Source: Adineta vaga
Taxonomy: Eukaryota > Animalia > Rotifera
Assembly: GCA_021613535.1 (NCBI GenBank)
Contig: CP075497.1
Location: 7,378,001 to 7,442,000 of the forward strand
Length of the DNA stretch: 64,000 nucleotides
Direction of reading: 5' to 3'
Shown here: positions 18,801-61,945 of the stretch, piece after piece
Position numbering within the stretch: position 1 is the stretch's first letter
How the letters are laid out: each line of letters starts with the position of its first letter
The notes under the pieces: model-generated
What the model was told of the DNA's origin: nothing
What the model saw: the letters and a program-made list of their open reading frames with translations, nothing else
Database searches by the model: none
Made by a program: the position numbers and the translations under genes

Positions 18801-20884
18801 CATTTATTGGTGTTGTTGGAACTAAATGTTCGCATAAAGTATATTTTACAGAAAATTTAAACTAATACCTTTCGCAGCTGTTACAGTTGATTGTTTCTTA
18901 TTTATTGCTGGTTTAACATCAGAATCACTACTGCTAGAACTGCTAGATTTGCTTGATTTCTTTGCAACAACTGGATTCACTTTAACTGGTTTTTTGTCTG
19001 TACTATCATCTGAAGAATCTGAATCCGATGATTCTTTTGTTTTTTTATTAACCAAAGTAGATGATGGTGTTACAGCATTCTTCTTCACTGGTGTTGTAGG
19101 AACAGCAGCTATAACATGAAATACTATGATTTAAACTTAAATTTGATAAATATATACCTGGAACTTTCACTTGTTTCTTATTGTCATCCGAATCACTGCT
19201 ACTGCTACTACTTGACGCTGCTGGTTTCTTTGCTGAAATAGGAGCAGCACTTTTTGGTTTAACTGAGACTGCTATAACTGGTTTTTTAACATTGTCATCT
19301 GACGAATCCGAATCAGACGAAGAAGATTTAGCTGCCTTTTGATTCTTATTCACTGTAGCGCCTATCGGTTTTACGGTTGATGTTGTTGCTAGTGCTGAAA
19401 AAATAGATAGCAACGAAATTCATTCGCATCATTGAACATTTGATCGTTACTTTTAAGTGGACTCTTTTTTGTCGCAGGTGATGTTTCTTCTTCGGAATCA
19501 CTGCTGCTTGAACTGCTAACCTTTTTGATTGTTGATGGAGTTACATTACTTTTCGCTGCCGCTGGTGTAGTTTGGACTTTTTTCTTATTATCATCTGATG
19601 AATCAGAATCTGAAGACGATGTATCCTTCTTCTTATTGTTGGTTACAGCAGGCTTTTTCGCGACTGGTGTGGATGTTAATGCTACAGTCGGTTTCTTCTT
19701 AGTCTTTTCATCTTCACTTGATGTATCACTACTATCAGATGAACTTGCCTTCTTTTTATTCACCACTGCTGGTGTACTTTTCGCCACTGGTGTTGCTGTT
19801 GCTACTACAAATCCAAAAGAAACTATCATACTTGATCATCAAAGATTTGTACTACCTTTGGCAACAACTGGCTTCGCTTTTGCATCATCATCGGAGTCAG
19901 AATCACTACTGCTTGACGGTGCTGCTTTCTTGACTGGCTGTGGAACAGTTTTAGCAGCTGGTGTTGATGCTGGTGCTTTTTTCTGTGTACTAGCGTCGTC
20001 TGATGAACTCGAATCGGATGAACTATCTTTCTTCTTGGTTGTTGTCAAACTAGCTGGTGGTGGTATCGCAGCTTTTGGTATAACTGAAATGATGGTAGAG
20101 ATATTACATTCTTGTCAATCAGTTGAAACAAGATTGATATACCTTTCGAGACTAATTGTGTTTTCTTCTGTGGTTGATTGTCATCGTCTGAATCAGAATC
20201 ACTACTACTTGATGGTGCAGCTTTTTTGACCGGTTGTTGAGATGGTTTAGTAGTAGGTGCTGATTTGACGGGTGTTTGTTTTTTGTTCTGGTTTGTATCA
20301 TCGTCAGATGAATCAGAATCTGAAGATGAATCTTTTTTCTTGTTACTTGTTTTGCTAGCTGGTGGTGGTGGTATCGCCGCCTTCTTAACAACTGATGCTC
20401 CGTTAACTATAAGAATAAGTGAATTCAGTAAGAAAAGAGATAGAAAATTGATTATCACCTTTGGTTGGTGTTGATGGAGGTTGTTTCTTATTAGCAGGTG
20501 GTGCAACATCATCTGAGTCTGAACTTGAGCTACTTGATGCTGCTGCTTTTCGTTTCAAATCAACTTTGACTGGTTGAACAGTTGGAGTAGTTTTTGAATT
20601 TGTCGATGGTTTCTTGGTATCTTCATCAGAGGAATCCGACGAAGATGATGAATCTTGTTTTTTCTTATTTCCATTTGTAAATGGAACAGCCTTTGGTGCC
20701 GAAATTGGGACCTTTTTTTGAACTTGAGTAGAAACTAAATTATCATTTGTCAATATCCTTATCAAAGTACAAAGAAATATTTCTTACTTCCTTTCTTTAT
20801 TGGTTGATCATCATCGGAATCATCACTGCTAGATGATTGCCTTGATGGAACTGTTTTTGTTTGTGAATCAGCAAGTTTAACCAT
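15837..20884 (-). CDS. NOLC1: Nucleolar and coiled-body phosphoprotein Nopp140 (SRP40 C-terminal domain), many exons
   Basis: Alternating SSSDSDSDD acidic and K/P/A/T basic repeats. C-terminal SPFRRVRE...[37 protein letters not shown]...SIKFDDSDE* is SRP40_C. Confidence 0.93.
17571..20369. repeat. Intragenic duplication in NOLC1: about 17571-18259 repeated at about 19681-20369 (offset 2110), introns included
   Basis: Near-identical ORF pairs 17608/19718 and 17729/19839. Intron sequences are near-identical, e.g. caaatccaaaagaaactatcatacttgatcatcaaagattt. Confidence 0.92.
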
Positions 20885-32339: not shown

Positions 32340-35296
32340 ATGACTGAAAAACTAATTCAACGTCGGCAAAATGTTAAAGATAAACGTTTGCTTGATAAAC
32401 AGAAAAATGACCATACTACTGAAACAACACAAAAACGAAAAGAATCTCGTCAAAATTTATCTTCATCAAAAACTGGACATAAGAATAACAAATCGTCTAT
32501 TCGAATCTTTGCATTATTTATTATCAGTCTTACTATTATAGTTGTTTTGTATAAACTTGTTACTGGAAATATTTATACTGAACATACAAATATTCCACTT
32601 GATTTACCAAAACTTACTGATGTTAATCAATCTATCTCGGAAAGATTTTGGGGAACATATAGGTAAAGAGCAATACTTTATATAGTAGGAAGAAAACTTA
32701 TATTTGATGAATAGATCAAATTTATATTTTGGTTTAAAACATCGAAGTGCACAATCGTTAAGTGCAGGATTAATGTGGTTTGATTATAGTACATTACAAA
32801 AGTCACAAGATCGATTTCTTCGGTAAAATGAAAAAAAAGAAATATTATTTTCCGAAAGGAAATTATTTTGTTTTTCTAGACATTGGTGTGATCAGAATGA
32901 TCGATTAAAATATGGATGGATATATCATGATGGAGAAAAGTTTGGAATTGAAAATATTACAGATACTAATTTACAAATGAAAATCGAATGGATCAGAGAA
33001 AATATTGGCAAGCATGGTGGAGATTGGACGAGCCGTATTAATGTTCTACCTCAAGTATGAATAGTTAACACATTTGATAGCCTGAAAGTTTTGCATATAG
33101 AACGACCTATAATAAATGATGAGTGATTGTTCATAGCATAGACATACTCTATCATTCTTTACAATATTCTTTTATATAAAACAAACCAAGATATGTATTT
33201 TGAATTTCTAGTCTAATAATTATTCTGTTCCGGTTTCTTTATTCTTCTATTTTCATCATGATTTTCCATGGATCAAACAAATTACATCAATTTCCAAACA
33301 ATCACCTCATCTTCTCACTGTTCGTGGTCAAACCAATGAACTCGATCAATTTACTATTAAAATCAAACTGAATACATTAACTCATAAACCAATCGTTCGT
33401 ACACTAACGGATGTGTTTCAACTCGATACAATTCATCAACATATTCTCTCGAAATTAACATCGAATCGTCCTGAACAACCATATTTTGTGTTAGCCGATC
33501 AACTCTTCAAATCTTCCGAACATAATACATTTTTCGTACAAATAACTTTACCAAAATTATTACCCGATGAAAATTTCTCATTTGATATTATCTATCAATC
33601 AGATTCATCTGATAATGAACGCCAACAAGATTTAGCAGATACTCATTTTAGTGAAGAAATTCTTCGTTTACAAAAACAATTTGATCAACGATTTGAAACT
33701 ATATTTCAATTGAAAAGTAAACAAAATATCTCGGCTAAAAAACTTCATTTTGCTCGTTCAACATTAAGTAATTTAATTGGTGGAATTTCATATTTTACCG
33801 GTAATATTAATCTTACAATTTTCATATAGCAAAAAAAAGAGAGTTTCTCTTCTCGATCTATCTTTAGGTCAATCTTCGGTAGCTCAATCAAATCAAAAGA
33901 TTCCCGATAAATATTGGACAACAAACTTATACACAGCTGTTCCATCACGTTCATTTTTTCCACGTGGTTTTCTTTGGGATGAAGGTTTTCATAATCTTCT
34001 TATTGCTCGATGGAATGAAAACATAACTATTGATATACTTTCACATTGGTTTGATATGTTAAATGATAATGGATGGATACCTCGAGTAAGATTTCAATTG
34101 ATTGGAATTTATAGTTATTTTCGAAAAACTCGCTTCATTCATTCATAGGAAATCATTCTTGGTGACGAAGCACGTGCTCGTGTTCCATCTGAATTCATCG
34201 TACAATATACGAACAATGCCAATCCTCCGACATTTTTTCTAACGATCGATTATTTATTAAAGAAAAATCGAACCAATCATCTTTTTACATTACCATTTAT
34301 TCAACGTTTAGAAAAATGGTATCAATGGTATAATCGTACTCAATCTGGTCCAATACCTTTTTCATTTCGTTGGCGTGGTCGAAATGCTTCGTCAATATTT
34401 GAACTTAATCCTAAAACACTCACAAGTGGTCTTGATGATTATCCTCGTGCATCACATCCAACCGATTCTGAACGTCATTTAGATTTACGTTGTTGGATAA
34501 CATTAGCATCATCAGTACTTGGTAAACTTTACTCTCTCATAGACAATAAACAAACAAACAAATATTTAACTTATGCACAATTACTTGCAAATAATGAACT
34601 ACTCGATCGATTACATTGGTCAGAAGACGATGAAATGTATGCTGATTATGGATTACATACTGATTATGTTAAATTAAAAAATGTTTTAGTACCGAAAACA
34701 TCACCATCACAACAGTATCAACAAAAACAAATGATTCGACAAATAACAAAAGAATCAGATCTTCAATTGAAATATGTTAAACATTTTGGTTATGTTTCTC
34801 TTTTTCCATTAATGACACGAGTTTTAGATCCACAATCAAAAAAACTTGAGAAAATTCTAGATGATTTACGAAATTCAACATTATTATGGACATCCTATGG
34901 TCTAAGATCATTAGCACAATCAAGTCCATTGTATGAAGCAAGAAATACTGAACATGATCCACCTTATTGGAGAGGTAAACATATCTTAGTTTGATGAATG
35001 AAAGAAAGTTTCTTAAATCATTTTCTACAGGTTCTATTTGGATTAATATGAATTATATGGTTTTATCAGCTTTACAACATTATGCAAAAACGTCTGGTCC
35101 ATATTCGGATAAGGCTAATGAAATTTATAATCAACTGCGTACAAATATTATAAATAATATGTTTCGTATTTATGAAAAAACAGGTCATATTTGGGAACAG
35201 TATGATGATCGTACTGGTAACGGTAAGGGTAGTCATCCATTTACGGGTTGGTCATCATTGATTGTTTTAATTATGTCGGAATTATATGATGAATAA
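32340..35296 (+). CDS. MOGS: Mannosyl-oligosaccharide glucosidase I (GH63)
   Basis: Type II TM; FWGTYR, PSRSFFPRGFLWDEGFH, GWIPRE, NPKTLTSGLDDYPRASHP, PPYWRG, WEQYDD...HPFTGW. Confidence 0.96.
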
Positions 35297-35712
35297 GTAA
35301 TGAATCTTCTCTTCCTAAAGAGAAGTAAGTAACTGAATGTGATGATGTGATAATCAGTGAAATTCTTCATGACTTTTGTTTCGCTTATTTTGTGTATGCG
35401 TATAGAAGTAATATTTGCGTTTTCTTTCGGTAATGGGCGTGACTTTTTTGTTTGTAGATTAATGTGAAAGATCATGATCGAATAATTTGAGTTTTAATAA
35501 GATAGATAAAAAGTCATTTTATTTCTTTTAGATTATTCTCTTTGTTTATATGACACGTATTTATCTGTGATTTCTCATGCATTCCTAGCGATATACATAA
35601 CATTCTTTGTCAAAAAAAAAACAAGTAAGATATTTTTTATCTAATATTTTCATTAATACATCTTTAACTTCTAGATTTAAGTCAAATTTAATTTGAATTA
35701 GAATTATTTCCA

Positions 35713-36716
35713 ATGGCTATTTCAAGTCGTCTCTTATTATTAATTACTTTTATTACTCTTTTTATATTAAGTATTTCAATTTACATTTATTCAAAAGATT
35801 ATTATCAAAATGGACGATATTCAAACATACAACTTACCCTACCGAATGGAACAAAAATTGTTTCGAACAAAAAAGATGATTCATTGTCTTCGAAAACCGA
35901 TCGAGGCGAAATAAAAACAAATAATCCTGGTTTTATTCAAGGATTTATTGCTTCACTATTCATTATTTTAATTACTGAATTAGGTGATAAAACATTTTTC
36001 ATTGCTGCGATTATGGCTATGCGCCATGCACGTCTAACTATCTATGTGGGTGCAATGGGTGCTCTTGGAACAATGACGATTTTGTCTGCTTTGTTCGGAG
36101 TTATGATAACGAAGTTTCTGCCAAGAATTTATACATATTATCTTTCAGGTATATTATTTGCATGTTTTGGTATTAAAATGTTGAAAGATGGATATGGAAT
36201 GTCACCAGATGAGGGTACAGAAGAATATGAAGAAGTTCAAAATGAAATTGAAAAAGCAGAAGCTAATGAAGATGTAGAGTTAGGTAATGGAGAATCAATA
36301 GATAATTCATCCAAAGGTAATCAGTCACAACAGAGATTACCACAAAAAAGTATGGGCGTTCGGATTGTGGCAATGATTCGTCGTTATATCTCACCAATTT
36401 TTATTCAAGCATTTATCATGACATTTCTTGCTGTGAGTAATTATTCTTTGATCAAATCAATTCTATTTTCAATCTGTTTCATCATTAGGAATGGGGTGAT
36501 CGTTCTCAGATATCAACAATTGTATTAGCTGCTGGTGAAAATCTTCTAGGGGTTATTGTAGGTGGTATCATAGGTCATGGTTTTTGTACTGGATTAGCTG
36601 TTCTTGGTGGACGTTTTGTTGCTCAATGTATATCACCTAAAACTGTAACACTTGTTGGTGGTGTTGTATTTTTATGTTTTGCTCTATCAACATTCTTTTT
36701 CCGTCCCGAAATTTAA
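35713..36716 (+). CDS. TMEM165: GDT1/TMEM165 Ca2+/Mn2+ exchanger
   Basis: ELGDKTFFIAAIMAMRH and spliced FLAEWGDRSQISTI are the two UPF0016 signature motifs. Confidence 0.95.
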
Positions 36717-41577: not shown

Positions 41578-42510
41578 AACTTTATTGACACATTTACTTC
41601 TATTTATAAAGTGAATTCTATGCGAAACAAATCGGTGAAGGGATGATGAATAGAAATTATATGATTCATCTTATGCTGTCAAACAGAGAAAGAAACGATT
41701 CTTCTTTTTCCTCTGTTCGTAGGAAAAAGTTATCGGTGTTTTGTTTTGTCTTTCTTTGCTTGGTTTTTTCCAATTTTGAAAAATAATTATTAGAACAGAG
41801 ACAAATAGTCGATTGTTATAATATAATTTATATTAAATTTATCATTCGATATGTATAAGGTATTTTTTCCAACTAAAAAGAATAAATTCAAGTTCTTTTT
41901 GTAAAATATAGAATTTCTTTAAAATTTATATTGTTATTTCTAGGAAGAATAAATAGACTAAAACAATAAGACAGTCATTTCCTTTCTTTCTTTCTTTCTC
42001 TATTCGATGACACAGAAATTAGTCATCAAACATAAAGATATTAGCGATAGTGATTGAAATGCATATTGAGGTTTTATGTATGAGGACCATAATATACACG
42101 GTTTGATTGACATATTTCTTTTGAGAAATAAATAAATGCCTAGAAAATGCGAAATCTTATTCTTTAGAATAGTGAAAAATCGATAGAAAATTTTTTGTAG
42201 AGCGGTTGAAAAGCAAATTTCAAGTTCGACAATAATGCATTAGTTATGGAAATTATAAAATCTATCAATGAATTTTTTTCTTCCACAACGTGAAATATAA
42301 TGTAACAACAAACATGTATACACTAGTAAAAACATTCGCCTACTCTTCTCCTATAGAAAGCGTTGTTTTTTTTCTCCGTCGATATAATCTTTTCTCTTGT
42401 GTCTGATGCAGACAGAGTTGTTTTTTTCTCTGCGTAGATTGTTTTTGAGATTTTACAATTTTTAAAGCCTTGTGCTAGATTTAATTTAAACGATTTATTT
42501 TCAAAGCAGT

Positions 42511-45355
42511 ATGTTCAAAATAAGATGTGACGGAGTAGTTCCGATGATGGATGCTTTATCTACCGATAATGACTCAGCATCAATGGATTCTGTTGTACCG
42601 GACGAAGATTCATCCAATGACGAATACGTTGAAGTAGTTACAAAACGTAGTAAGAGCTTTATATTTTTTTTCTTCTACTCAACAATAAATGCATTTTATC
42701 ACTAGATGCTGTGAATAAAAGTGAGAAACAGGTTAAAACTAACAAACGTACAAAAAAACGTAATAATACGAAATACAAAAAGGAGAGAAATGAGCCAATG
42801 TACACAATCATAAAGCAGGTATTTATTCGTATTGTTTTAATATACGTATAATAATAAATCTATGGAATAGACTTCATATTTTCCTCCTGAATCTATGTGT
42901 AAATTAACGGGGTGGCATCTATATAAAATCAAAGTAGCAAATTATGATTATTTTGGCTTTATTGTACCTTGCATACTAGGAAAGGTAAATTTTTGTTTGA
43001 TAAATTTATTCTTACAATGAAGAATTTATTCTAGATACCACCGTTCACCTTTCCTCGAAACAATGTAGAATCAATTGTAAAAGTGGAATATGTAGAACCA
43101 ATTAATTACAATAAATACAAAGATCAGTTTGAAAAATTTTGTCGATATATTTTCGAAGAAGATTTCACTGATATGAATACAGGACCAGAAGCAATTCTCA
43201 AGTTTGATATTGAATCTTCACCTTTCAAATTACTACCATGTCTATTAACAAGTAAGACTCTTGACTTACTTATCTATTATAAAATCAATTATTTTTAGAT
43301 TTGGGCAGTATAGATTATCGACAAATGCATTTGATATGTAGTAAAACAAATAGATTGGACCAGAATTTGCAGGAAATAGATGATGATGATGATGATGTTG
43401 ATGTTCAATCAAGTTCATCAGTGGTACAGTTCCATGCGTGTCTACCTCAAATTATCTCATCAAAGAGAAAAGCTGTTCAAAGGATGTCTTCAAAACGATC
43501 GAATACGGGTACATGCGAATATTTTGATAAAACAACTATAATGACAGCCACGAAAGAAGATGATATCTGTTATTCACATGAGAAATCCACGATAAAAGAT
43601 GAACAATCAACTCTTCAATCATCTCATGCTCCGCTTCCTGTTTCGGATCGTGATATATCCAATCACAAAAAATCGCAATTCGCTCCTGAATTACCAAAAA
43701 TTCTTGATCTTATTTCTCAAGTGTTTTATAAAAATAAATTAAGAGAACTATTAATTGATGCTACTGGCTCACATTCGGTAATATTTACAAATGCAGACAC
43801 ATACATGAACATGTACAATTCTTATGTATTTTTCTTTTGTAGACAAATGATCTTGACGGCATGTCACCTGTCACTTTTACTAATTCTCTTCCAACTATAC
43901 TTTCATCGGTAAGATTCTCAGAAACTGTATACTGTATACACTATAGCTTTATTTTTCTGTATATACAGCCAAATGTATTGCCCCTAACCAGTCTTTCTCA
44001 TGATTTGGTATCGGAGAATAACTGCGGGTTACATCCAAAATTTGATCTACTTTTTCAAGCGACTACTTGTCATTTAGCTGATGAAAATAGTAATATGGAG
44101 AATTTAGAAACGCTTGGAGATTCTTTTCTTAAAACAACAAGTCTATCTGTTTCTTACCAGTGTCCCGTGGGTGAGGATAAGAAACTGACAGTCGAAAGAG
44201 ATAAACATGTCGCAATGAGAATCTCTGTCGGTTGGCTCGCGAAAAAGGTTTACACAATTACTTAAACGCTCATAAATCAATCTATAGTGGAAAACAAGCG
44301 AATTGGCTACCACCTGGTTATAAAGTTCATGATGAGAAAAATGCAGAAAAGTATATGAAAGGAAAAGTGAAAGAAAAAGTTATTGCTGATATGGTTGAAG
44401 CATTGATTGGTTGCTACTTAGTATCTAGTGATTATATAACAACTTTGAAACTTATGCAATGGTTAGGTCTAAATGTAATTCCATTGGATGAACAAAGTAA
44501 AATGCAATATTAATCATGTCAGAAGTAAAAATATTTAATTTAGGAAATGTGATAACAACATTTCCACTTCTCCGTTCAGACATTAAGATCAAAAAATCAA
44601 TTGAAGAAATGTTCTATGAAAAGTCATTCACAGAAATCGAGGAAAGACTCATCGCTCATAAGTTCAAAGAAAGAGCATATCTCATTGCTGCTTTCACTCA
44701 TCCATCATATAACAATACGGCGTCAACCATAAGTTATAACAAGTAAATGAATGTATTGTTCAAATAGTATCTTCATCTATTGTTCGTAGATTGAAATTCG
44801 TGGGTAATCCATTGTTCGAGTTCTTGTTAACTCGTTATATTTTTGTCGAAAAGAAATTAACAACTCCACGTAAGAATGTTTTGTCAGTCTTGTATTTAAT
44901 CAAACATATTTTTTATAGATGAGGTAACACGCATTCGAAACAAACTAGCAAATTCGGATCACAAAGCCAGTATTATGAAAGACCATAGGCTGTATACTAA
45001 ACTTCTTTTTTGTGAAGCAGAACATGCTAAAACAGTGTCTGATTCTGACTCTGAGCAGTCATCGATGGATCATAATGTATGTTGGTTATAGCTTCTGAGA
45101 AAAGATATCATTTTTTCTTTTACAGAATATCGCAAAACCGTCACTTCAGGAGACAAAAGAAGTTCAAGCGTCTATTTTTGATGCACTTATAGGTGCTATA
45201 TTTTTCGATACAAATTGCTCACTAAATATTGTTTGGGATGCTATATGTTTCTTGATGCAATCACATATTGGTGTGTAAATGTAACTCTTAATGTTAAAAA
45301 TATATATTTTTCTTTATATTTGTTAGATGATGCTATTAATAATCTGAATTTATAG
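42511..45355 (+). pseudogene. Dicer-like A: no helicase, degenerate PAZ, RNase IIIa motifs intact, RNase IIIb inactive, no dsRBD, one frameshift at about 44212
   Basis: Platform exons are homologous to Dicer B (FKLLPCLLT). IIIa has ENLETLGDSFLK and IADMVEALIG. IIIb has KLKFVGNPLFEF and QASIFDALIG. Intron positions are shared with B. It may be functional if the frameshift is an assembly error. Confidence 0.75.
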
Positions 45356-45451
45356 TCAATACATTCATCTAATTACCTATCACCAACATCTCAATTTAAA
45401 GAAAAAATAAACACTCTGGTATTGCAACTTATTCCATAAAACCAACGCAGT

Positions 45452-45554
45452 ATTGGATATTACAATAATGTGTATATCTTCGGTATAAACTGTTCAATAC
45501 GGATTGAACCGTTGATATCAAAGATATATAGATATTATTGTAATATCAGGCAAT
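45452..45554 (+). ncRNA. Pre-miRNA-like hairpin (about 40-bp stem, 4-nt loop)
   Basis: gatattacaataat/attattgtaatatc (14 bp perfect), tgtatatctt/aagatatata, gttcaat/attgaac around loop acgg (45499-45502). The structure is seen; expression is unknown. Confidence 0.45.
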
Positions 45555-46083
45555 TTCTATATAAGAGTTTAAATGCAAACCGATTTTTATGCATGTCTGT
45601 AGAGTACTGTCCCTTCTATCGTTATCTCGTGGTTCAGTATCGTGCGTAGTTGAGAAACGAAATGAGATCAAATTTCAGTAACTCGATAGTAATACTCTAC
45701 CTTTTAGTTAGGAGAGTTGTAGATTTTTCATTCACAGGTTCCAATAACGAGTGGTTTTCCATGAGGATTTTGTTCTAGAAGAATCAATGCTATTTGGATA
45801 GGTCTATTCCGAATCGCTCTCAATCAGTTTTTTTTTCAACAGAATGGACATTGAAGAACGACTTCAGTGTCCTACTTCATACTCTTTTGAGAAAACTTGA
45901 GTGAGAATGACTTGAAATTAGCCTAACGAAAAGTCGTTGGTCTTTTCAACATTAAGTTCTCTTGGCAAGTAACTCGCGATTAATACTTTTGAAGGAAAAA
46001 TCCCCCTGTTTATGGAATGATATTTTTTATGCATTCAAAAGAAAATATGTATTCCATTACCTTCCAATAATCATATAGCGTAG

Positions 46084-46587
46084 GTAAGCAGTCTTTGACG
46101 ATTAATCTTTGCAGGCATTCGAACTTTCATCATGGTACAAGCTCCAGTAGACATGAACATCTCCAGAATGACAAGTATCTATCGATGTTCCTTGCAAAGT
46201 GATAATCATTTTACTGAACATCATCGAATCCGCGTCACAATAGATTTTTCAAAGAGTTTTATGATGAAATTTCAACTTGGTATTACAGTCACAGAGATAT
46301 GTATTTGACAGTTGAATACGCTCTAAAGTTTGACTACTTTTCAGGATTCATAGCAATATAGAGATATCTCCGTGAGTTTAATGATACCAAGTTGAAATTT
46401 CATTATAAAACTGCTCGAAATCGATTGTAACGCGAACCCGATAATATTCAGCAAAATGATTATCACTTTGCAAGGAACATCGATAGATACTTGTCATTCT
46501 GGAGATGTTCATGTCTCACTGGAGCTTGTTTTATGAAGAGAGTTCGAGACAGGCAATGATTCATCATCTGAGACTGTTTTCTTGTAG
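46084..46587 (+). repeat. Long fold-back inverted repeat (about 240-nt arms) bounded by GTAAG and TTTTCTTGTAG
   Basis: 46149-46212 is the exact reverse complement of 46453-46516 (64 bp). Imperfect pairing extends out to 46084/46581 and in to about 46330. Confidence 0.92.
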
Positions 46588-47231
46588 AAGAGAAAGAGAG
46601 GACCTTTCATTTTTGTCAGTAATAGTCAGCCATGTATAACTATCGAGTTAATGAACTATGATTCTTATTTCTTTTTGAAAACACGCATGATTCAACACGA
46701 TGAGGTCGCGATCAGCAGTTTTTTGTTGTTTTCTATTGTTTTCGATTTATGTTTGTCAATGAATCTTTTTTTTTGTAATAAAAAATATTCAATCGTCGAA
46801 AAAACCAGTATTGGTTCACGTAAAATTCTCATTTTGTTAAAATGATAATATAAAATTCAATATTTACATGAGAACGATGTGTTTATGAGCAATTGTATCA
46901 TTTCTGATTGTTCGTTCTTGTTAAACATTATGCAGTTTGACTACTATGAAACGAAAAAAACCCAGTAACCACGTGTGGATTTCGAGATGTTTTCTTTTCT
47001 GATTCAAATAAGAAAGAGAATCAAATGCAGCCACCAAAAACATCAACAGAACGCAAAATTTCCATTCTTTTTTTAAGTATTTTGGTGAGTTAACATTAGT
47101 CGAGCATTTTCATGTAGTAATCATATTGCTGTAGGTTTAACAACCATACATTCGTTAATGGTTACAACTACAACTTCGCAAGTTATATAGATTAATTTTT
47201 TTCTGAATAAATTTCGCATTCTGGTAGCACG

Positions 47232-50200
47232 ATGACTGATAGAAATAGAGTCGATCTTGATCCTCGGTCATATCAAGTAGATACATTCTTTTTTCACTTC
47301 AAATATATCATAGATTTAATTTACATAGACGGAAATAGTGGAACAAGCAAAATCAAAGAATTTGATTGTTTGTCTTCCAACTGGCAGTGGAAAAACGTAT
47401 ATTGCTGTTATGCTTATTAAAGAACTATTGCCCATGACTCGACAATCTCTCGCTGATGGAGGAAAACGAACTATTATTCTCGTGAAAACAGGTATTTAAT
47501 TTTCTTGAATCGGATCATAAAACTTCTTAATTTTATTTTTATTCAAGTCGAACTTGGTCGACAGCATTATAATACAATAGATAGCCATCTTAAATTAGAA
47601 ATTATAGCTTATGCTGATTCCCCGCAAATTCGATTACAAGATAGAGAAAAATGGATGAAAATATTTGAAAAGTATAAAATCTTGATTTTTACCGCACAAA
47701 CATATGTTAATCTACTTCAACATGGTCTTTGTTGTAAGATAAAGGCAATGGATTTTTCAGCAAATTGTAATTGTTTCTTTTTCAGCATTAAATCAAGTGA
47801 ATTTATTAATTTTTGACGAATGTCATCATGCAAGTGGTAATGATCCTTATACGACAGTAATGAAACAGTATGATGCACGTTCCGATTCGCCTCGTATACT
47901 CGGATTAACTGCATCGATTAGTGGACAAAAGCTTAAACCGAAAGATCTACAAAAAGCTGCTGGTGAATTAGAAAAAATGTATCAGTAAGTTTCAGTATAA
48001 TATTGAAAGTGATTTGTATAACAGCAATGATTTCTAGTGCACAAATTGAGACTGGATCTGATCGAGATGTAATCATTCAAAATAGTACATCAGTAAAAGT
48101 GCAACATGATCGTTGTGATAACTATAAACAATACATCACTGTCAAGAAAAGAACGGAAGTTATGAATATCTTTAAAGTTAGTTTTCGTTGTTTGTTATAC
48201 GATGATAGTTTGAGCTTGTATTTAATTTAGATAGCCGAATCGCTTCGTGATGAACTCGATAAGTATTTAAAATCCAAAACGCAAGAAGTCGAAATGAAGA
48301 ATGATACATCAAAAATAGCAGATCAATCAGTGTTTATTTCTTTACATTGTCGAACTTTGAAACAATTGAAATCTCATCTAGATAATATTATACATATTGG
48401 TGATGATCTTGGTTTCCAAGGATTTCTTCACGGAATAATAGCATTAAACAAGCATTTGAAAGCAAATCCTTTGTATGGAATAATAAGTGATGAAGTTGGA
48501 AAAAGCGTATACAATAATATCAAAGATAAACTTAATTCTATTATCAATACCAATACAGAAGCTTTTACCAATGATCAAAAAATTAAATATAGTGATAAAG
48601 TTATGAAAGTAAAAGAATACATAATAAACAATCAAGATAGTCAATGTATTGTCTTTGTCGAACGAGTTTATACAGCTGCTTTTTTATGTCAAGTGTTACG
48701 CGAAATTTTCGAAGGAACTAAGAAAATACAATATATTTCTGGTTCAAAAGCTTATATTGATGAAATCAGTGTTTCAAAAGCTTCGAATGCTGGAATCAGT
48801 AATCCGACAACAGATGAAGTCCGTGAATATCACAATTGAAATCATTTTATTTAATTTTAATTTTTAGTGTGACGTAGTTAAAATGTTTAGAAAGAAAACT
48901 TGCAATGTTTTGGTATCTACAGCTATCATTGAAGAAGGTTCGAAACAAAAAATACTTAAATATCGTTTATATGTGAGAAATTTATTTTACTTTCTAGGTT
49001 TGGATGTTCCGGAATGTAATCTTGTTATTCGTTTTAATAAACCTCAAAATTTATCATCTTATTTACAATCCAAAGGACGTGCAAGAAAGCTAGGAGGAAA
49101 CGCATTATTTGTTGTGTTAAGAGATGAAGCTACTCCCGAAAGTTACGCTCTAAATAAAGAAGAATATCTCAATTACGAATGTATAGAAAAGGTTAGTAGA
49201 TTACAATGCTTCTATATTCACTTCCTATTTCCTTATTGTTAACACTACAGTTATTAAAAAACAATTTTAAAAGTGAACACGATTTCGATCCATCATCGAA
49301 TGGCGACGATAATTTACTGAAACCATATCAAACACAGAAAGTGAAAATTGATGCAATACGTGCCATTGAAATCATATATCAGTATGTACATAATTCGATG
49401 ATTGTCTATTATTTTTATTCTATTTCTTTTAAGATATTGTGCTGTTCTTGGTACTAGTACATTTTTGTCACCTCAATTTTACTTTTCTTCAATTGAACAT
49501 AAAAATTTTCAATGTATTCTAACAATGCCTATCAATTGTCCAATTACTGAACCTGTTATTGTAAATTTTCGATTTCTCTCGGAAACTTCTCATTTTTGTT
49601 TTTTCATAGTGTGCAAACAAAACAAAGAAATTAGCGAAACAAGAATGCTGTTTGACAATGGTGAAAATGCTTTGCGAGAAAAGTAATGATTTTGAATAGT
49701 ATGTATTTAAAAGATTTCAGATACTTTTCATAGACGAACTCGATGAATATTGTTTACCAATTATTTTGAAGCGACGTTTAAAAACAGATCATACTTTCGG
49801 TGATGATCCAGGTAGATCAACACTTGAATCAATAGACATACAAGTATCTATTCATGTTTCGAAATACAACAAAGATTATGAATTAATTCGTTCTATTAAT
49901 TAGATTTCGTATTTATTCCATACATACAATCATGCGTCAACGGATTGGTATTTATATAGAATTAATATTTCAGACAATGATGATCTTGGTTTTGTTATTC
50001 CTGTTCAATTAAAATCTACAGTAATGATATATTTTATCCACGTGATTATTTTATAAACTTATCTTTAGTTACCACACTTTACACTCTATGGTCGTGATAA
50101 GGAATTTATCGTGGAAATTCATTGTGTGAAAGTGATTGATATTCAAGAATGTACAGATCAATTGGAGACCTTTTGTCAATATATTTTCGAAGAAGTGTTC

Positions 50201-52689
50201 GACGCAATGAATATAAAATTAGAATCTATTCTTCAATTTGATCTTCAATCTTCTACATACAAATTATTACCATGTCTTTTAACAAGTAAGAATATCGTAT
50301 TTCTTGTCGTTGTTTTACTCGGATTCATTAATAGAATCGGATGATATTGATTATCAACGAATGAGAACAATATGTGAAAGAAACAACAAGTCTATTACGC
50401 ATCCATCAGAACTCAATGATAATGAAGTTTATTATATTTCATATATGTCAGACAGACAATTTTTTCGAAGTATTTCTGATCAATCTCTATTGAAACGATC
50501 AACAGACAAACGAGAAGATAGAAAATCAGATAGCAACGATGAAAGTTATGCAGAATATTTCGAACAAAAAGTACCTGGTATTCGTGTTCAGGAAAATCAC
50601 CTGGCCACAGTGAAAGATTTTAGAAAACCAAGAATCGATTATCTGAAAGATGCGACAAGAAAGAAAGACAAAGAATCAATAAGTGGACCATCATATTTCG
50701 TAATAGAAGTTGTACGTTATGCTCCATTGAATCAAGAAGATTTTGAATTGATTTATAAATTACCAAGTATTCTTATTCGTTTATCACAATTGTATTATGT
50801 TGAACAGCTTCGACAACTATTGAGTCCTTTTCGCTCAATATCATATGCAGTAAGGAGAAAAATTTCACAATATCATCGAATTTTATACTTATTTCCGTTC
50901 TAGATGTCGAATGATGATGATAAATTACCAATAACTTTCACTGATTGCCTTGAAACTATATTTTCATCAGTAAGTTCTTTGGAAAGTCTATTTAGTACCA
51001 TCTATGATCTTTTTACTTCGATAGTCTTCATCAACAGCATTGCCACTTACTTGTTTTCGTTATGATTTTCTATTACAGAAGAAGTCTCGACTACAACCTC
51101 CACCTGAATTATTATTTCAAGCAATTACGCGACGTGCAGCAGATGAAAATACTGATATGGAGAATCTGGAGATATTAGGTGATTGTTTTCTTAAACTAGC
51201 GATGTCTTTGTCACTTTTCCATCAATATCCAACTGGTGACGCAGGAAAACTAACAACAGAAAAGGATTGGTTTGTTTCGAACTTGAATCTTTATCAATTA
51301 GCCATGAAAAAAGGTTTACAAAATTACTTAAACGCTCATAAACCAATCTACAGTGGAAATCAAGCGAATTGGATGCCACCAGGTTATAAAGTTGATGCGA
51401 ACAATGCAGAAAAGTATATGAAAGGAAAAGTGAAACGAAAAGCGATTGCTGATATGATTGAAGCATTGATTGGTTGCTACTTAGTATCTACTGATTATAT
51501 AACAACTTTGAAATTTATGCAATGGTTAGATTTGAAGGTGATTCCAATAAACGATGCAGGTAAGAATAATAATTCATTAGAATTTGAGTAATGATAATGA
51601 CAAAATAGATCAAATGGAAATACCGCCTGTTCTACGTCCGGGTCTAATTGATACCATGCCTGATGTTATAAATCAAGTTAACGCATTTTTTATCAATCAG
51701 GAGTTTGATAAAATTGAAAAAGAGATCAATTATATTTTTAAAAATAAAGCCTATCTCATTGCAGCATTCACTCATGCATCCTATGTCAATAATCGTCTTA
51801 CACAATGTTATGAAAGGTATATCGAAACTAATACGACTCAATAATAATCATATATTTTCAATAGATTAGAATATTTGGGCGATGCTGTATTAGATTTTTT
51901 AGTTATTCGGTGTTTATTTATTGAACATTACAAACATGTTACACCAAGTAAAACCTAGTCGAAATATATATATTTTTTAAATTAGATGAATTTGTTTTCT
52001 TAGGTCGAGTAACTAATCTTCGACAAGATTTATCCAATAATGGTCGTTTAGCATATATTCTCTATTCTTGTCAACTTCACAAAAAAATTCTTTATTTATC
52101 ACCACATCTTTTTTCTCAAATAGAATTGTTTCACAAAGCTATGACTGAACGTTCAGAAAAACAAGCAACTGAAGAACAAGTAAGTGAAATGATGGTTTTG
52201 AGAACCATTATAAACACGAGAATTTTTATTATATCAAGGATATTTATGAATGGGCTGATTCTACAGCACCAAAACCACTCGCTGATGTATTTGAAGCATT
52301 AGTTGGAGCGATATTCATTGATTGTGGATATTCATTAGATACTGTTTGGAAGGTTATTGAACCTTTACTACGGCAATACATTGGTATGTTATTATTAAAA
52401 AGAAACAATTTAATTTAAGTTGTCTATTACTATTTAGATCAATCTATTAAAAAAACGAATATTAATCCGATACGAACAGTTTTTGAAAAAGGTGGCAAAT
52501 ATCTCAAGTAAGTTATGTTTCCATTAATTTCATATGAAATTCTTTCTTTTGTTAAGACAAACAACCGATGGTAAAGGAAATTTTACTTATACGATAATAT
52601 TACTCAATGGAGAAAAGGTGACAGGTCATGGAAAGAATACAAAACTGGCAAAATATGATTCTTGTCGGCGAGCAATAAAACTTTTGTAG
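47232..52689 (+). CDS. Dicer B: full-length Dicer (DExD helicase, DUF283, platform/PAZ, RNase IIIa+b, dsRBD)
   Basis: [52 protein letters not shown]. IIIa: [12 protein letters not shown] and [10 protein letters not shown]. IIIb: [13 protein letters not shown] and [10 protein letters not shown]. Terminal [18 protein letters not shown]. Confidence 0.94.
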
Positions 52690-52796
52690 AGATTTTTATT
52701 TAACTTTCTTATCGCATTTTTGTTGACTATATTTATCACGTGTGATAGTTAAAACGAAGACAAATTTTTCGTCTATTTTATTTTATTTTTTCAGAA

Positions 52797-55627
52797 ATGT
52801 CCATTAAAAAACAATTATTTAAGTTATGTGATGAATTATTCGAGAAAAAAGATGAAAATACCAAAGAAATATTTTCGAAAAAGGTTGAATTTTTCTTTGA
52901 TTTGTATGAACTGATGTTTTTCCTTCTTAGACTGCTCTCTTATTTGGAAAAGCAGATCTTGCAAGAAATATCTGGTATCTTTATCAAATAAATATTCATT
53001 CAAATACAAAAGAAAATAATGAATTAGGATTTATTGTTCCTTGGAAATTAATGGAAGTAAAGATAACGATCTAAATATTTCTATCTAATTATTCATGAGT
53101 TGTACTTCTCTAGTTACCGATATATAACGATGAAGAATCGACAATAAAAGTAATATTTCAAAAAGAAGTTAATTATTTAGAAAACTGTCGTTTATACGAA
53201 CGATTTTCAAAACATATTTTCGAAAATGTGTTTGATTACATTACATTTGAATTTAATATCCATTCTTCGACTTTTAAATTACTGCCATGTTTATTAACAG
53301 GTAGAGGAAATGTTAGTTTTTTTAAAGACTTCTAGCTTTATTTTCTTAAACATAAGATCGGAATGAAATCGATTTCGATCGTATGTTGAATATCTGTCAA
53401 CGTCATAGAAAATCTCTTGAACATCCATCGCATTTATCTACTACAGAATTATATACTGTGTGGCATCTTTCAACAAAACCTTTTTACATATATCAGTCGA
53501 ATGCAACTTCTCCTATAAAACGAGCAATAGATCGCAAGACTGGCACACAGACTTACGCTGATTATTACGAGAGAATCACTCCGAATATATATATTCAAGC
53601 AGATTGGATAATGAGTTCAATGAAAGCAATTAATAAACTGAAACTATCATTAAATATACGAGAATATGAAATTTATTCATCGGATCAGACAATTTATTAT
53701 TATCCAATCGAAGTTCTATATTATGCTCCATTAAATCAACGAGATTTTCAATTAATATCGATGTTACCTAGTATTCTCGTTCGAATAGTTCAACTATATC
53801 ATCTTGAACGATTGAGAAAATTACTTGCAGTTAATCTCAATTCTTATCCGGTAAAATAATTCTTTTCGTTCAATTAAATGTACAAAAATCTGTACTGTAG
53901 TTAATAAAATCGAACAAAGTAACGTTTAAAGATGGTCTTGTAGAGTACATGCAAATGGTAAGTTTGAATATCTTTTCAATTCTATTCATTATTACTTTTC
54001 TCCATTTTTGGTTGTGTTCAATCGATTAAATTATGAAATTAGCAGTATGGATGACCATTTAATTCATCAACAACCATCAGTTGATATATTATTTCAAGCG
54101 ATAACAAGATGCGCAGCTCATGAACAAGTGAATCTGGAAAATTTAGAAGCTCTTGGTGATTGTTTTCTGAAATTTGCCGTATCTATGTCACTCTATTATC
54201 AATTTCCTTCGGCGACTGTGGGTGAATTGACAAAAGAAAAAAAATACAGAAATTACGAATAAAAATCTTTATCGATTAGTTGTGATGAATAAATTGAAAA
54301 GCTATCTTTACTCTGATAAGATTATTCTCCATGGTAATGATTCAAATTGGTTACCACCAGGATACGTTACTAAAAGCAAAGATCAGAAGAAGTACACACA
54401 TCAAATAGTAAAACGTAAAGCATTTGCTGATATGATCGAAGCATTGATTGGAGCTTTTCTTATTTCAAGTAGCTATATGACAACAATTAGATTTATGCAA
54501 TGGCTTGGATTAAATGTCATACCGTTAGATGAGAAAGGTAAACTTTTTGTTTAGAAATTATGATTCTAGTCTCGATCTTCTAAAGATTGTATCATGTCGA
54601 TACCATCAATCATTGATTCCTCATTGATGAATGAAATCAATCGCATTTTTCAAGATGAAGGATTTAGCGAGATCGAAGAGAAACTTCAATATAGCTTTCG
54701 AAATAAAGCATATCTCATTTCAGCTTTTACTCATCCATCGAAAACTATGCAGTGCAATGGTATTTCATATGAAAGGTACGATCACTTTCCATTATTAGTT
54801 CTAGTTTAAAATCTTGTTTCGTTATAGACTACAATTTCTAGGCGATGCTCTTCTCGATTTCTTAGTCATTCGTCACGCATTTCTTCATTATGATAAACAT
54901 GTTACACCAGGTAATATATTCGTACTTGTGTATTTTCAGCATTTCAAATGAATGCTATTTTATTAGGTCGATTGACCGATATTCGACAAGATCTACCCAG
55001 TAATAATCGTTTAGGATATATCCTGGTTTTATCTCAACTTCATACAAAAATTCGATATCATTCAAATGAACTTTCTCAACAAATTCAAACTTATGTAAAT
55101 ACAGTCAATACTCTGTCAAAAACTCTATCAGCAAAAGTATTATAAATCTAATAGCATTATAGCGATCTAATGAACATTTTCATTAGAATATTTCAACAAA
55201 AGCACCAAAAGTATTTGCTGATGTCTTTGAAAGTTTGATAGCTGCTATCTCTTTTGATTCGAATAATTCATTGGAAATCGTTTGGAAAGTGATTGAGCCA
55301 TTTCTTGGAAATTTTCTTGGTACACAATTGAATCTTTTCAGAATATTCAGAAATAGTTTTCTATTTAGATCGATCTATCATTGATCCTAATTTGAATCCG
55401 ATAAAATCCGTTGCAAATGAAAATGGTAAATTCCTTGCGTAAGTGTCAAATCACCATTGATTTTATTGAATAGTATTTTCATTATTGTATATAGAGAATT
55501 CACAGATGAAACTGGTGCTATTTGTTTGGTTCAAATGGCAGATGGTAGTATGTATGAAGGTCATGGGCAAAATAAAAATCAAGCTAAATCCGACGCTTGT
55601 CAAAAAGCATTGAAACGTAAAAATTGA
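52797..55627 (+). CDS. Dicer-like C: no helicase; platform/PAZ, RNase IIIa, RNase IIIb with E>Q, dsRBD; +1 frameshift in A8 run at 54237-54244
   Basis: FKLLPCLLT; TYADYYE (PAZ); ENLEALGDCFLK and [10 protein letters not shown]; ERLQFLGDALLDF and FADVFESLIA; GHGQNKNQAKSDACQKAL. Removing one A restores ...TKEKNTEITNKNLYRL. Confidence 0.8.
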
Positions 55628-59543: not shown

Positions 59544-61945
59544 ATGTCGATACTTGAAACTATCAGTATAGTTGTACTACAACATAGTTACATTTCTCAT
59601 TTCTTTTCCTATTAACATTTAGAAAGCGCATTTACACAACAAGTAAGAGAAAAAAAAATCGATAAAGTGGAGAGTAAAGCTTGCTTATTGAACAAATAAT
59701 ATATCTATGTATGCCATAGACACAATTATTCCTTGTCATTTACTTCTTTTCCTTTATTTATATGCATTTCATTTGCGTGTGTTAGTTTCATTTAGATGAT
59801 TGTCATTGTCAGCTGAATGAAAGATGTTAAGAGTATAAGTGTCTTGACAACGACTCAGTAACAACCTGTTATGACATTAAAAAAATCATTTCGTTCTGTC
59901 TTCCTCTTAAGCAAATAAATCTTTCTTTCTTTTCTGTATTTTACCTCTTTTTTTCTTTCTTTTCAGACCAAAGTCCGATCAGCGAAAAAAAAATGACGGC
60001 ATTGGTGTTTTTGTTATTTCTTTTCTGTCAAAACTCAATTTAATACACTTCATACTTTGTATTTTTTTATCCATCCATCCAATTTCAACTCATTCACATA
60101 TGTGCCTTTCATCGCAAACTGTTGTTTGTTCTTGTTCTACGTCGTCAATGGGTATGGCAAAAGAATATTTCAAATATTTTCAATGTATTTAGTGCAAACT
60201 TTTTTTTTCTATTTTAATACTTTAGCATCAACAACATCAGTAGCCACAGACGATCTAATATCGAACGGTCTAGAAACAGATTTCTCTTCGAAAGATATAC
60301 TTGTTGATAAAAATTCTATGCCTGAAGATGATCCAAATGGAAATACTTTACATGAAGCTCATAATATACGTTGGGGACCTCAGCATGCCGGTGCAAAATT
60401 ACTTGCCAGTCAATATACGAATGGTAAGAGAGAAAAAGAAAAGTTCTTTTCAATAAGAAAATGATCTTGTATCAAAAAAAGAAGAAAAGAAAAGAAATTT
60501 GACACTGACAATGTATTCATATTTTTTTCTGAGTATATACTTCAAAAGGAAATATAAAGTTATTAGTCTCTCTAATGAATTGTATAGTTGGTTAAATCAG
60601 TCTTTTCTTTTTAAAGTGGTTAGTAGGTAGTCTTCTAAAATTTTATTTCTGATTAGAATATTAAAAAAAAAACAAATTAGTTCAGGCAATGTATGACTAA
60701 AATATAATTAGCATTTGAAAAATTAATCAATTTTATGCCTGGAAGAAACAAAAGAAAAGTGAAATCTTCTTATTTTATGCTCAATATTTATCAATGAACT
60801 TGCTCGAAATAACTAGAGATTCGTAGTGATTTCTTTGCCTCTTTGATCATTTATACACATAATCCAATATGAATATTAAATTTCATGGTCTAATTCAATT
60901 GATTCTATTTTTGATTGCCTCAAGGCTTATCTCAATATTCGAAAAACTCGATTTTCCTTTTCTTTTTCCTTTATAATATCAAACTAATGAAAACTTTTTC
61001 GTTCTTTGATTCTTTTAGAAAAACGTGCACAAGAATTAATCTCCATTATTCTATGTGTTTTATTAATGATGTACAATTTTTTCTTTATTTGTTCTTATTT
61101 CGATGTTAGAAATTGGTATTTAATCATTCCTTCTGCTTGTATGTTAAATTGAATTTCGTTTATATGAAAGAAATCTATTTTATTTATATAGTGCTAGGAA
61201 TTTCAACAGCGGACTTAGCATCAGGTATTGTCCATTGGGGTGCTGATACATGGGGTTCAGTTGATATGCCATTTATTGGTCGAAATTTTTTACGTCCATT
61301 TCGAGAACATCATATTGATCCAACATCGATAACACGTCATGACTTTATTGAAACAAATGGTGACAATTTTGCTGTTATTATTCCATATTTTCTCTATATG
61401 GCTTATAAGTTCACATTTTTCTCTGAAACTGATATAAGACGTTCATATAATTTTGAAGTTTACATGTTTCTTCTTGCTATATTTGTGTCAATGACGAATC
61501 AGGTAGATAAGACAAAACACTTGAAGTTTATTTTATTTATGACTCAATGTTTTAGTTCCATAAATGGTCACATACCTATTTTGGTCTACCTTCTTACATT
61601 GTCTTCTTACAACGTTATCATATTATTCTACCTCGCAAACATCATCGGATACATCACGGTAAATCTAGTACAATTCTTAGAGATTAATTTTAACGAATTT
61701 CCTTCTTGTTATTTTAGTTGTGCCTCATGATACCTATTTTTGTAGTTAGTATTTTTGATATTAAAAGTCAAAAGAAACGATTTATTCATTTGTTTATAGT
61801 TACAACTGGTTGGTTAAATCGACCATTGGAAATGATCCAGTTTTGGTCTTGTTTGGAAGCAATTGTGGAAAAATATACGGGAGCTAAACCTCGCTCAGAT
61901 GATTTTGCTTGGGCACAAAAGACAGAAAATGTTCATTATGAATAA
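59544..61945 (+). CDS. PEDS1: Plasmanylethanolamine desaturase (TMEM189/Kua)
   Basis: [80 protein letters not shown]. The first exon (MSILETI) is inferred from phase match. Confidence 0.93.

Follow-up and report, generated by a model that had tools for sequence, protein, structure and literature searches.

Bdelloid rotifers, which are ancient asexuals, are believed to rely strongly on RNA silencing against transposons and foreign DNA. Among the closest described systems are those in which a transcript of the small-RNA pathway itself carries or meets pathway products: the Microprocessor cleaves hairpins in the DGCR8 mRNA (the Drosha-DGCR8 feedback), and Arabidopsis DCL1 harbors miR838 in an intron and is targeted by miR162. 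Closer in phylogeny, N-terminally truncated DICER2 paralogues are described in Adineta ricciae (PMC11114477). Published surveys required both PAZ and Dicer_dimer Pfam domains for a Dicer call (PMC7943196), and thus skip helicase-less copies such as the two described below.

The 64-kb window of Adineta vaga (the whole stretch of DNA that was analyzed) contains three paralogous Dicer-type genes in the order A, B, C, all on the + strand (repeat families D1-D13; tblastn map; Table 1), with the helicase-less copies A and C flanking one complete Dicer, B. The initial annotation had proposed three tandem Dicers with a fold-back spacer, and its account of order, strand, the 107-nt gap with TTTCAG-AA-ATG, and shared intron positions is borne out; donor sites common to the three genes include that of family D12 (at 43235, 50269 and 53284 in A, B and C). 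The B stop codon lies at 52687-52689 and the C ATG at 52797; at other loci the corresponding gap is ~93 nt (L009) or ~72 nt (L012), but 1.8 kb at L028. A conserved non-coding block upstream of B is probably its promoter or 5'UTR.

Table 1. Features of the Dicer cluster (coordinates are positions in the window)
Feature	Position	Strand	Basis or description
Gene A, "pseudo-Dicer", 12 exons	42511..45355	+	RNA joints, RNase III match, platform homology to B
A frameshift, 1-nt deletion in RNase IIIa, assembled allele	44210	+	First stop at codon 474 as assembled
A stretch 84-87% DNA-identical to B 51285-51563	44219..44500	+	Families D1, D4
Small conserved hairpin	45450..45553	+	Stem ~40-45 bp, 4-nt loop; 95 nt past A stop codon
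Left outer arm, ancestral large inverted repeat	45640..45695	+	Pairs with 46634-46662 (I6; fold)
Mid fold-back, imperfect long hairpin	45722..46012	+	-91.5 kcal/mol, z -5.3
Big fold-back	46086..46579	+	Repeat pairs I1, I2, I7; ~240-nt arms; 99-nt core 92% complementary
Right outer arm, ancestral large inverted repeat	46634..46700	+	Inverted-repeat search, homology, fold
Conserved non-coding block upstream of B	46943..47075	+	68-75% identity to L010 and L016 counterparts
Gene B, full-length Dicer, Dicer-2 type	47233..52689	+	Pfam; RNA joints in 5' part; catalytic motifs
B-C gap, 107 nt, T-rich	52690..52796	+	Final letters TTTCAG-AA before ATG
Gene C, helicase-less Dicer	52797..55627	+	Pfam; PAZ-exon model; orthologues; dN/dS
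A8 run, +1 frameshift in C RNase IIIa as assembled	54237..54244	+	One base more than seven orthologues (DNA alignment)
CAA codon: catalytic Glu to Gln, C RNase IIIb motif LQFLGD	54832..54834	+	Orthologue comparison

Within the cluster, the helicase and the Dicer dimerization domain (DUF283) are confined to B, in which Pfam finds ResIII/DEAD, Helicase_C, Dicer_dimer, a weak PAZ (E 0.0024, under the Pfam cut-off), two RNase III and a weak dsrm domain; the four RNase III motifs are intact and all eight catalytic residues are present. In both A and C, Pfam finds traces of RNase III and dsrm only, and no helicase or Dicer_dimer exons. The first block homologous to B is formed in each by the platform exons (tblastn), as the initial annotation had it. 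The A and C frames keep roughly 750 codons or more open in AT-rich DNA.

The N-terminus of A is acidic and is followed by a basic, NLS-like KTNKRTKKR, as had been read from the sequence. Ten of its 11 introns are confirmed by RNA joints; the remaining one (43909-43968) is placed by its GT..AG ends and by an RNA contig beginning at 43968. Given one extra base at 44210 (frame check with a placeholder), the ORF comprises 755 codons; both DNA run X3 and RNA run X15 carry an additional A after that position, and RNA run X16 has the form of the window. The RNase IIIb motif of A reads LKFVGN / ASIFDAL, and the LKF[IV]GN form (Glu to Lys, Asp to Asn) is kept in three A-type genes; in RNase IIIa, Glu is changed to Ala in 4 of 9 A-type genes, and the A type lacks the full catalytic Glu/Asp set of two RNase III domains. 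By these motifs, A RNase IIIb is catalytically dead through an old, conserved change, so that A is unable to dice by itself. Its PAZ is degenerate in A. vaga (the exon is 24% identical to that of B and has lost the near-invariant YAPLNQxDF motif), and it has no dsRBD. The stretch of A most similar to B (Table 1) is a probable gene-conversion tract, as protein identity outside it is ~45-50%. Selection on the A family across species is purifying (dN/dS 0.33-0.50), and where other runs have indels in A exons, their lengths are multiples of three. In A. vaga itself, constraint on A seems relaxed: among the differences listed against X3, 17 are non-synonymous and 4 synonymous, one allele is frameshifted, and the PAZ core is lost.

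Gene C consists of a conserved N-terminus, platform, PAZ with connector helix, RNase IIIa, RNase IIIb and dsRBD. A model of its PAZ exon (pLDDT 87.8) matches the PAZ cassettes of Giardia, DCL4, Dicer-2 and human Dicer, with TM-scores (by query) of 0.5-0.6. The C-type orthologues retain PAZ, both catalytic sites and the dsRBD, LEF[LF]GD being found in all seven that cover the RNase IIIb motif, and dN/dS across species (0.18-0.31) indicates purifying selection. Judged from sequence and model, the C class is thus a helicase-less minimal Dicer of the Giardia type (platform-PAZ-connector-two RNase III), of which the assembled copy carries one additional base in an A8 run. The initial annotation had pointed to Giardia as a case in which helicase-less Dicers can be active; this picture fits C only, and A, with its dead RNase IIIb, degenerate PAZ and missing dsRBD, is no active Dicer of that kind. 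Nor did that annotation include the frameshifts of A and C as assembled, both of which lie inside RNase IIIa.

The arrangement is a bdelloid-rotifer Dicer-2 gene cluster kept between species. The complete set A, hairpins, B, C is found in this order at L009 and L028; A, hairpins, B at L010 (Adineta steineri) and L016; A with hairpins at L019; and B adjoining C at L012. Beyond the two loci with the complete layout, three show part of it only, their contigs being cut. In A. steineri, A and hairpins are duplicated as one unit with the hairpins retained in both copies; downstream of the first copy lies no Dicer but an unrelated VWA7-type gene. Such recurrence suggests a functional unit rather than a chance arrangement. 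The homoeologous locus in the A. vaga genome has one full Dicer only, and its orthologue L069 likewise has a single Dicer.

The A-B spacer (1.9 kb) is full of fold-backs. Besides these, the 64-kb window has just two local inverted repeats of at least 36 nt, both weak (72-73% complementary) and with their arms nearly 1 kb or more apart. The fold-backs reported by the initial annotation are upheld by folding, with z-scores of -6.7 for the small hairpin (-38.9 kcal/mol), -5.3 for the mid fold-back and -27 for the big one (-271.8 kcal/mol; z -29 on the - strand). The mid and big fold-backs are enclosed by an outer stem (45640-45695 / 46634-46700), whose left arm has its homologue in the outer arm of the large hairpin at L016. 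Every A-type gene inspected is followed by one hairpin of ~90 nt and another of 200-500 nt, and across lineages with synonymous divergence from 0.3 to above 1 the two hairpins keep their place, their order and, in the small one, part of the sequence. A covariance model of the small hairpin matches all seven A-downstream spacers (here at 45432-45570, 112 bits), with no match in 213 kb of control Dicer loci. Double changes occur in 19 of its 32 pairs, and 89% of cells are paired (8 sequences), compared with 27-47% in slid controls; none of 500 shuffles reaches these values. In the large hairpin the sequence turns over rapidly and pairing is retained: between species, orthologous arms share 63-71% identity, yet the two arms of a locus reach 85-95% complementarity, and compensatory exceed one-sided changes at shared pairs by 24:4 and 27:2. 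Compensatory changes have therefore preserved the pairing of both hairpins from the split of the sampled species onward, and conservation of the layout, which the initial annotation had proposed as a check, extends to the hairpins as well as to the gene order. Since the small hairpin and the big fold-back are each single-copy in the 100.8-Mb genome, a MITE or foldback transposon was rejected; a canonical animal microRNA precursor, in which a hairpin of ~60-70 nt with a terminal loop would be expected, was likewise rejected for the small hairpin, given its 40-45-bp stem and 4-nt loop and the absence of any Rfam family at gathering score.

A is transcribed and spliced, as shown by GT..AG joints in three RNA studies. 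In record 9 of the X16 RNA contigs, A exons 10-12 are joined to 45326-45704, which includes the small hairpin; at least part of the hairpin region is thus on RNA that continues from the A coding exons, in agreement with the possible co-transcription raised at the outset as far as A and the small hairpin are concerned. X9 contigs extend over 45400-46233 and 46504-46818; together the contigs, which are strandless and none of which crosses the whole hairpin, cover most of 45326-46233, plus 46504-46818, and in X15 and X16 no RNA contig lies over 46200-46999. An AATAAA at 45406 and the end of an X15 contig at 45438 suggest that the main A poly(A) site may fall just before the small hairpin, in which case the hairpins would be present on read-through or separate transcripts only. 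The X16 contig and the covariation together give the feature known from DGCR8, i.e. a hairpin, conserved between species, that is carried by the mRNA of a gene of the pathway. The proposal of a small-RNA module was to fall if A and C were untranscribed or neutral, the hairpins gave no small RNAs and the layout was unconserved; in the checks run at the family level, A is transcribed, neither A nor C is neutral, and the layout is conserved.

The best explanation of the whole, to which we give a probability of roughly 0.45 and which is thus tentative, is a conserved Dicer-2 cluster in which the hairpins after A are Dicer substrates that regulate A. The hairpins would act as RNA, as built-in substrates of the neighboring Dicers, and cutting them would sever or destabilize the extended transcript of A and may also block read-through into B. 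The A protein, being non-catalytic, would likely serve as a dsRNA-binding partner or competitor, in an amount that tracks the dicing capacity of the cell, closing a feedback loop like that of Drosha on DGCR8 mRNA. As A, and perhaps C, is frameshifted in the assembled allele, the module may be partly relaxed in this lineage. That the homoeologous locus and L069 manage with one Dicer counts against this explanation, as do the possible poly(A) site ahead of the small hairpin, the want of X15 and X16 contigs over 46200-46999, the lack of a strand signal among wobble-type mismatches, the relaxed state of A within the species, and the frameshift and Glu-to-Gln change of the assembled C. In an extended version, which we regard as unlikely, the cluster would be a self-contained RNAi homeostat or sensor: the mRNA of a dead Dicer with substrate hairpins would report free dicing capacity, which heavy dsRNA load or a viral suppressor, for instance, would lower, and the A protein would tune B and C, the arrangement having been retained across bdelloids since before the sampled species split.

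The hairpins might instead be ordinary trans-acting hairpin-RNA (endo-siRNA) genes that silence other genes or transposons, their adjacency to Dicers being historical and without regulatory link to A or B. Their length and near-perfect pairing resemble Drosophila hpRNA precursors, the region is transcribed, and rapid turnover with pairing kept is what siRNA-target co-evolution would produce; yet neither hairpin has a second match in the genome, a whole-genome search for targets with extended complementarity to the arms giving self matches only, so that no extended target is visible. Moreover, the hairpins are found after every inspected A-type gene and nowhere else, and were duplicated along with A in A. 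steineri, and we consider this origin improbable.

It is still harder to accept that the hairpins have no RNA function and are DNA palindromes homogenized by intra-palindrome gene conversion, with A, and perhaps C, a decaying partial duplicate of B. Mismatches that would be wobble pairs number 64 on the + and 68 on the - strand, with no strand signal, and folding works equally well for either strand; pairing could therefore be maintained at the DNA level, via arm-to-arm conversion. Two lineages have acquired new nested inverted repeats within the loop, and the 17:4 allele differences and frameshift allele of A, like the frameshift and Glu-to-Gln change of C, are in keeping with decay. Decay does not, however, accommodate the expression and splicing of A, the purifying selection on A and C between species, their long open frames in AT-rich DNA, or the persistence of hairpin position, order and partial sequence over the divergence given above, and short perfect palindromes are unstable in DNA. 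Least probable of all is a role as fail-safe terminator or insulator dependent on RNase III, for which the Rnt1 sites that follow yeast genes would be the parallel: A read-through RNA would be cut and the B promoter shielded from transcriptional interference. The hairpins do lie between same-strand genes, with the likely poly(A) signal (45406) ahead of them and the conserved block upstream of B behind, and RNA coverage fades over 46200-47000; but termination is not measurable by contig coverage, a stem of more than 200 bp far exceeds what a terminator needs, and the first A. steineri copy precedes a VWA7-type gene and not a Dicer.

A compact active Dicer and a dead paralogue joined to a full Dicer in one conserved unit, RNA structures maintained by compensatory evolution, and the placing of these structures directly on or after the transcript of the dead paralogue would together amount to a new wiring of the pathway. 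With this cluster, autoregulation of Dicer can be put to a concrete test in an animal, and small-RNA libraries of A. vaga have been reported (PMC12256650).

As in Drosha-DGCR8 and DCL1, a component of the pathway has a conserved hairpin in its own transcript, and this hairpin adjoins genes of RNase III enzymes that could cut it. Unlike in DGCR8, the rotifer hairpins come after the coding region of a catalytically dead Dicer paralogue, one stem is longer than 200 bp, and the proposed cleavage would be by Dicer and not Drosha. With Drosophila hpRNA loci the spacer shares long inverted repeats in a transcribed region, near-perfect stems of hundreds of bp, and fast sequence turnover with pairing retained, but it has no genomic target with extended complementarity, and its hairpins are fixed beside Dicer genes in several species. 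Gene C resembles Giardia intestinalis Dicer in its platform-PAZ-connector-RNase IIIa-IIIb organization without helicase, in the match of its PAZ-exon model to 2ffl, and in the retention of all catalytic residues by its orthologues; it differs in having a dsRBD as well as a short, conserved extension at the N-terminus, in being a tandem paralogue beside full Dicers, and, in the assembled copy, in its frameshift and Glu-to-Gln change. The nearest relatives are the A. ricciae paralogues, likewise helicase-less, of Dicer-2 type and from the genus Adineta; the portion of that account dealing with them speaks of truncation only (PMC11114477), and to this the A. vaga locus adds the A-B-C order, the dead RNase IIIb of the A class and the hairpins, which are not mentioned there.

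The source of the window is a bdelloid rotifer, judging by the relatives of its Dicer exons, the closest named ones being Rotaria, Didymodactylos carnosus and Adineta steineri. The host assembly comprises 100.8 Mb in six contigs, and the window has a G+C content of ~30% with GT..AG introns of ~50 nt; the segment at 16001-20000 departs from the rest in G+C (0.37 vs ~0.30 elsewhere) and in a strongly negative AT skew (-0.18 to -0.23). Three paralogous Dicer units, from repeat families D1-D13, lie on the + strand. Protein searches and folding of A, B and C were run per exon, and exons were joined only for the frame of A (with a placeholder at the break), for dN/dS and for the tree alignment columns. 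The initial annotation had described A and C as helicase-less genes starting at the platform, which exon matches bear out, and the N-terminus of A is indeed acidic and then basic. It had also called the N-termini of A and C new and unrelated; for that of A no counterpart is detected in L009 (an ENA contig) or L010 (an A. steineri contig), both with complete A-type genes, and the N-terminus of C is conserved. The 107-nt gap between B and C closes with a pyrimidine tract and an AG, directly before the ATG of C.

Dicer-type genes and fold-backs of the cluster, in window positions
Feature	Position	Strand	Character
A	42511-45355	+	begins at platform exons; without helicase, without DUF283
B	47233-52689	+	ResIII/DEAD, Helicase_C, Dicer_dimer, weak PAZ, two RNase III, weak dsRBD
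C	52797-55627	+	begins at platform exons; without helicase, without DUF283
Small hairpin	45450-45553		stem 40-45 bp, 4-nt loop, z -6.7
Outer stem	45640-45695 with 46634-46700		surrounds mid and big hairpins
Mid hairpin	45722-46012		z -5.3
Big hairpin	46086-46579		+ strand -271.8 kcal/mol, z -27; - strand -283.9, z -29

Comparison of sequences between loci establishes a conserved three-gene Dicer cluster. The order and strand of the window (A-type, spacer, B-type, C-type) recur in full in L009 and in L028, a JGI contig, and the layout, whose conservation in other species had been put forward as a check, recurs in part in further loci: two A-type genes and then B in L010, A with spacer and B in L016, A with spacer in L019, and B followed by C in L012. 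The B-C gap measures ~93 nt in L009, ~72 nt in L012 and 1.8 kb in L028. The cluster is flanked by a GH63 glycosidase and GDT1 upstream (33239-36435) and by a lipid desaturase downstream (61266-61936); the homoeologous block on contig C3 of the same genome (8.80 Mb; G000:C3:8796000-8815999, L003+L006) has the same flanking genes and a single full Dicer only, as does its orthologue on metagenome contigs L069-L073. Two more full Dicers in the genome are without short neighbours. In the gene tree of the shared domains the C clade alone is well supported (100). Didymodactylos carnosus, of an early-branching bdelloid group, has a full and a helicase-less Dicer, each on its own short contig (L067 and L068, with no hairpin match in either); the two are tree sisters with support of 100, which suggests either that the short gene was truncated independently or that the paralogues underwent gene conversion. 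A contig from a non-bdelloid metagenome, WLWD01001312.1 (L032, L037), bears two Dicer-like RNase IIIa matches separated by ~13.5 kb; both have 31-32% identity to B, and they may represent another tandem Dicer pair.

Sequence comparison likewise establishes that two hairpin elements, conserved and with compensating changes, go with the A gene. The fold-backs claimed for the A-B spacer are real by folding statistics (z-values in the table), and the 64-kb window contains no other strong local inverted repeats of comparable size, two further pairs being just 72-73% complementary. In 7/7 available A-downstream spacers a small hairpin is followed by a large inverted repeat. A covariance model trained on four small hairpins recovered three unseen ones, in L016, L019 and L028 (E 1e-8 to 7e-7), with no match in other Dicer loci totalling 213 kb. 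Across eight small-hairpin sequences 89% of cells are paired and double changes occur at 19 of the 32 pairs; none of 500 shuffles matches this pairing, and slid partners fall to 27-47% paired. The large hairpin is orthologous among L009, L010 and L016 (63-71% identity), its arms within one locus are 85-95% complementary, and compensatory changes at shared pairs outnumber one-sided changes by 24:4 and 27:2. In the window, as in one of the A. steineri copies, ~1 kb of younger, nested fold-backs now lies between the old outer arms. A. steineri has duplicated A together with its hairpins, as a single unit, and an unrelated gene comes after the first copy; the hairpins thus accompany A, not B. The large-hairpin loop of that first copy (L010:2684-4700) carries a ~1-kb insertion that is itself an inverted repeat, with 102-nt arms. 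The pairing may instead be kept by conversion between the arms at the level of DNA, since a G:U wobble test of RNA- versus DNA-level maintenance gave no strand bias (64 vs 68).

Transcription was followed in contigs of read runs aligned to window positions 42400-48399, a segment that covers A, the spacer and the 5' part of B. Runs X9, X15 and X16, from three studies, have the character of RNA: ten A introns, plus the first introns of B, are skipped at GT..AG in their contigs. A is therefore transcribed and spliced, which for A goes against one outcome (A and C untranscribed) that would have counted against the proposed module. As assembled, A and C both shift frame within RNase IIIa, a feature that the initial annotation did not mention. 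In A one base is absent at 44210; an extra A behind this position in DNA run X3 and RNA run X15 yields an open frame of 755 codons, and RNA run X16 has the form of the window, so that the lesion is an allele or strain variant and is not fixed. In C the A8 run at 54237-54244 is one base longer than in seven orthologues in a DNA alignment, and would be either a homopolymer error of the assembly or a real null allele. The protein collection contains no same-species protein for C (best match 73% identical), and a Logan contig of a relative, checked for the C frameshift, is genomic and not cDNA. The lesion in A lies at the 5' edge of a tract of ~280 bp of RNase IIIa (A 44219-44500, B 51285-51563) with 84-87% DNA identity between A and B, outside which their protein identity is ~50%; the tract suggests gene conversion.

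Neutral evolution of A and C, a second outcome weighed against the module, is not what the codons indicate: pairwise dN/dS (NG86 on alignable codons, dS 0.3-0.9) is 0.18-0.31 for C-type pairs, 0.33-0.50 for A-type pairs and ~0.3-0.55 for B-type pairs, and by this measure the A and C families are both non-neutral between species. Inside the species, A gives a picture of relaxed or rapid evolution: among the listed differences from X3, 17 are non-synonymous and 4 synonymous. The catalytic motifs are intact in every B-type gene and in every C-type gene except window C, which reads LQFLGD. In A-type genes RNase IIIb is dead, with LKF[IV]GN in three lineages with visible exon, and the catalytic Glu of IIIa is Ala in four of nine. 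A has no dsRBD, and its PAZ exon in this species is 24% identical to that of B and is devoid of a near-invariant motif. The view of A as a plain dead pseudogene loses weight with the intact allele that X3 and X15 carry, with in-frame indels, with conserved orthologues and with dN/dS below 0.5.

Most of the spacer is expressed, as is A, in contigs that carry neither strand nor ends. Record 9 of X16 joins A exons 10-12 to 45326-45704, including the small hairpin, and X9 contigs span 45400-46233 and 46504-46818; X15 and X16 are without contigs over 46200-46999. The main 3' end of A could fall just before the hairpins, with an AATAAA at 45406 and an X15 contig stopping at 45438; scans for AATAAA and for sigma-70 promoters and terminators are uninformative in this AT-rich eukaryotic DNA. 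An X16 contig departs from the window at 45795 and resumes with sequence resembling 45838 onward (gap 45796-45837), which points to an allele that lacks ~42 nt of the spacer or has diverged strongly there. A mirtron-like giant intron finds no support, as no joint among those listed removes 46084-46587 and an X9 contig crosses 46084. Rfam comparison of 45300-47300 gave no fitting family; the miRNA and snoRNA matches that came up are generic and below threshold. A transposon or MITE is ruled out by the fact that the small and big hairpins are both single-copy in the 100.8 Mb of the genome.

For the conserved cluster and its paired elements we infer that the stems function at the RNA level, where B and/or C would cut them; dicing activity would thereby be coupled with the abundance of the non-catalytic A protein, or with read-through into B. 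Neither the order of the cluster nor the class with a dead RNase IIIb nor the hairpins turned up in a literature search. [quoted passage not shown]
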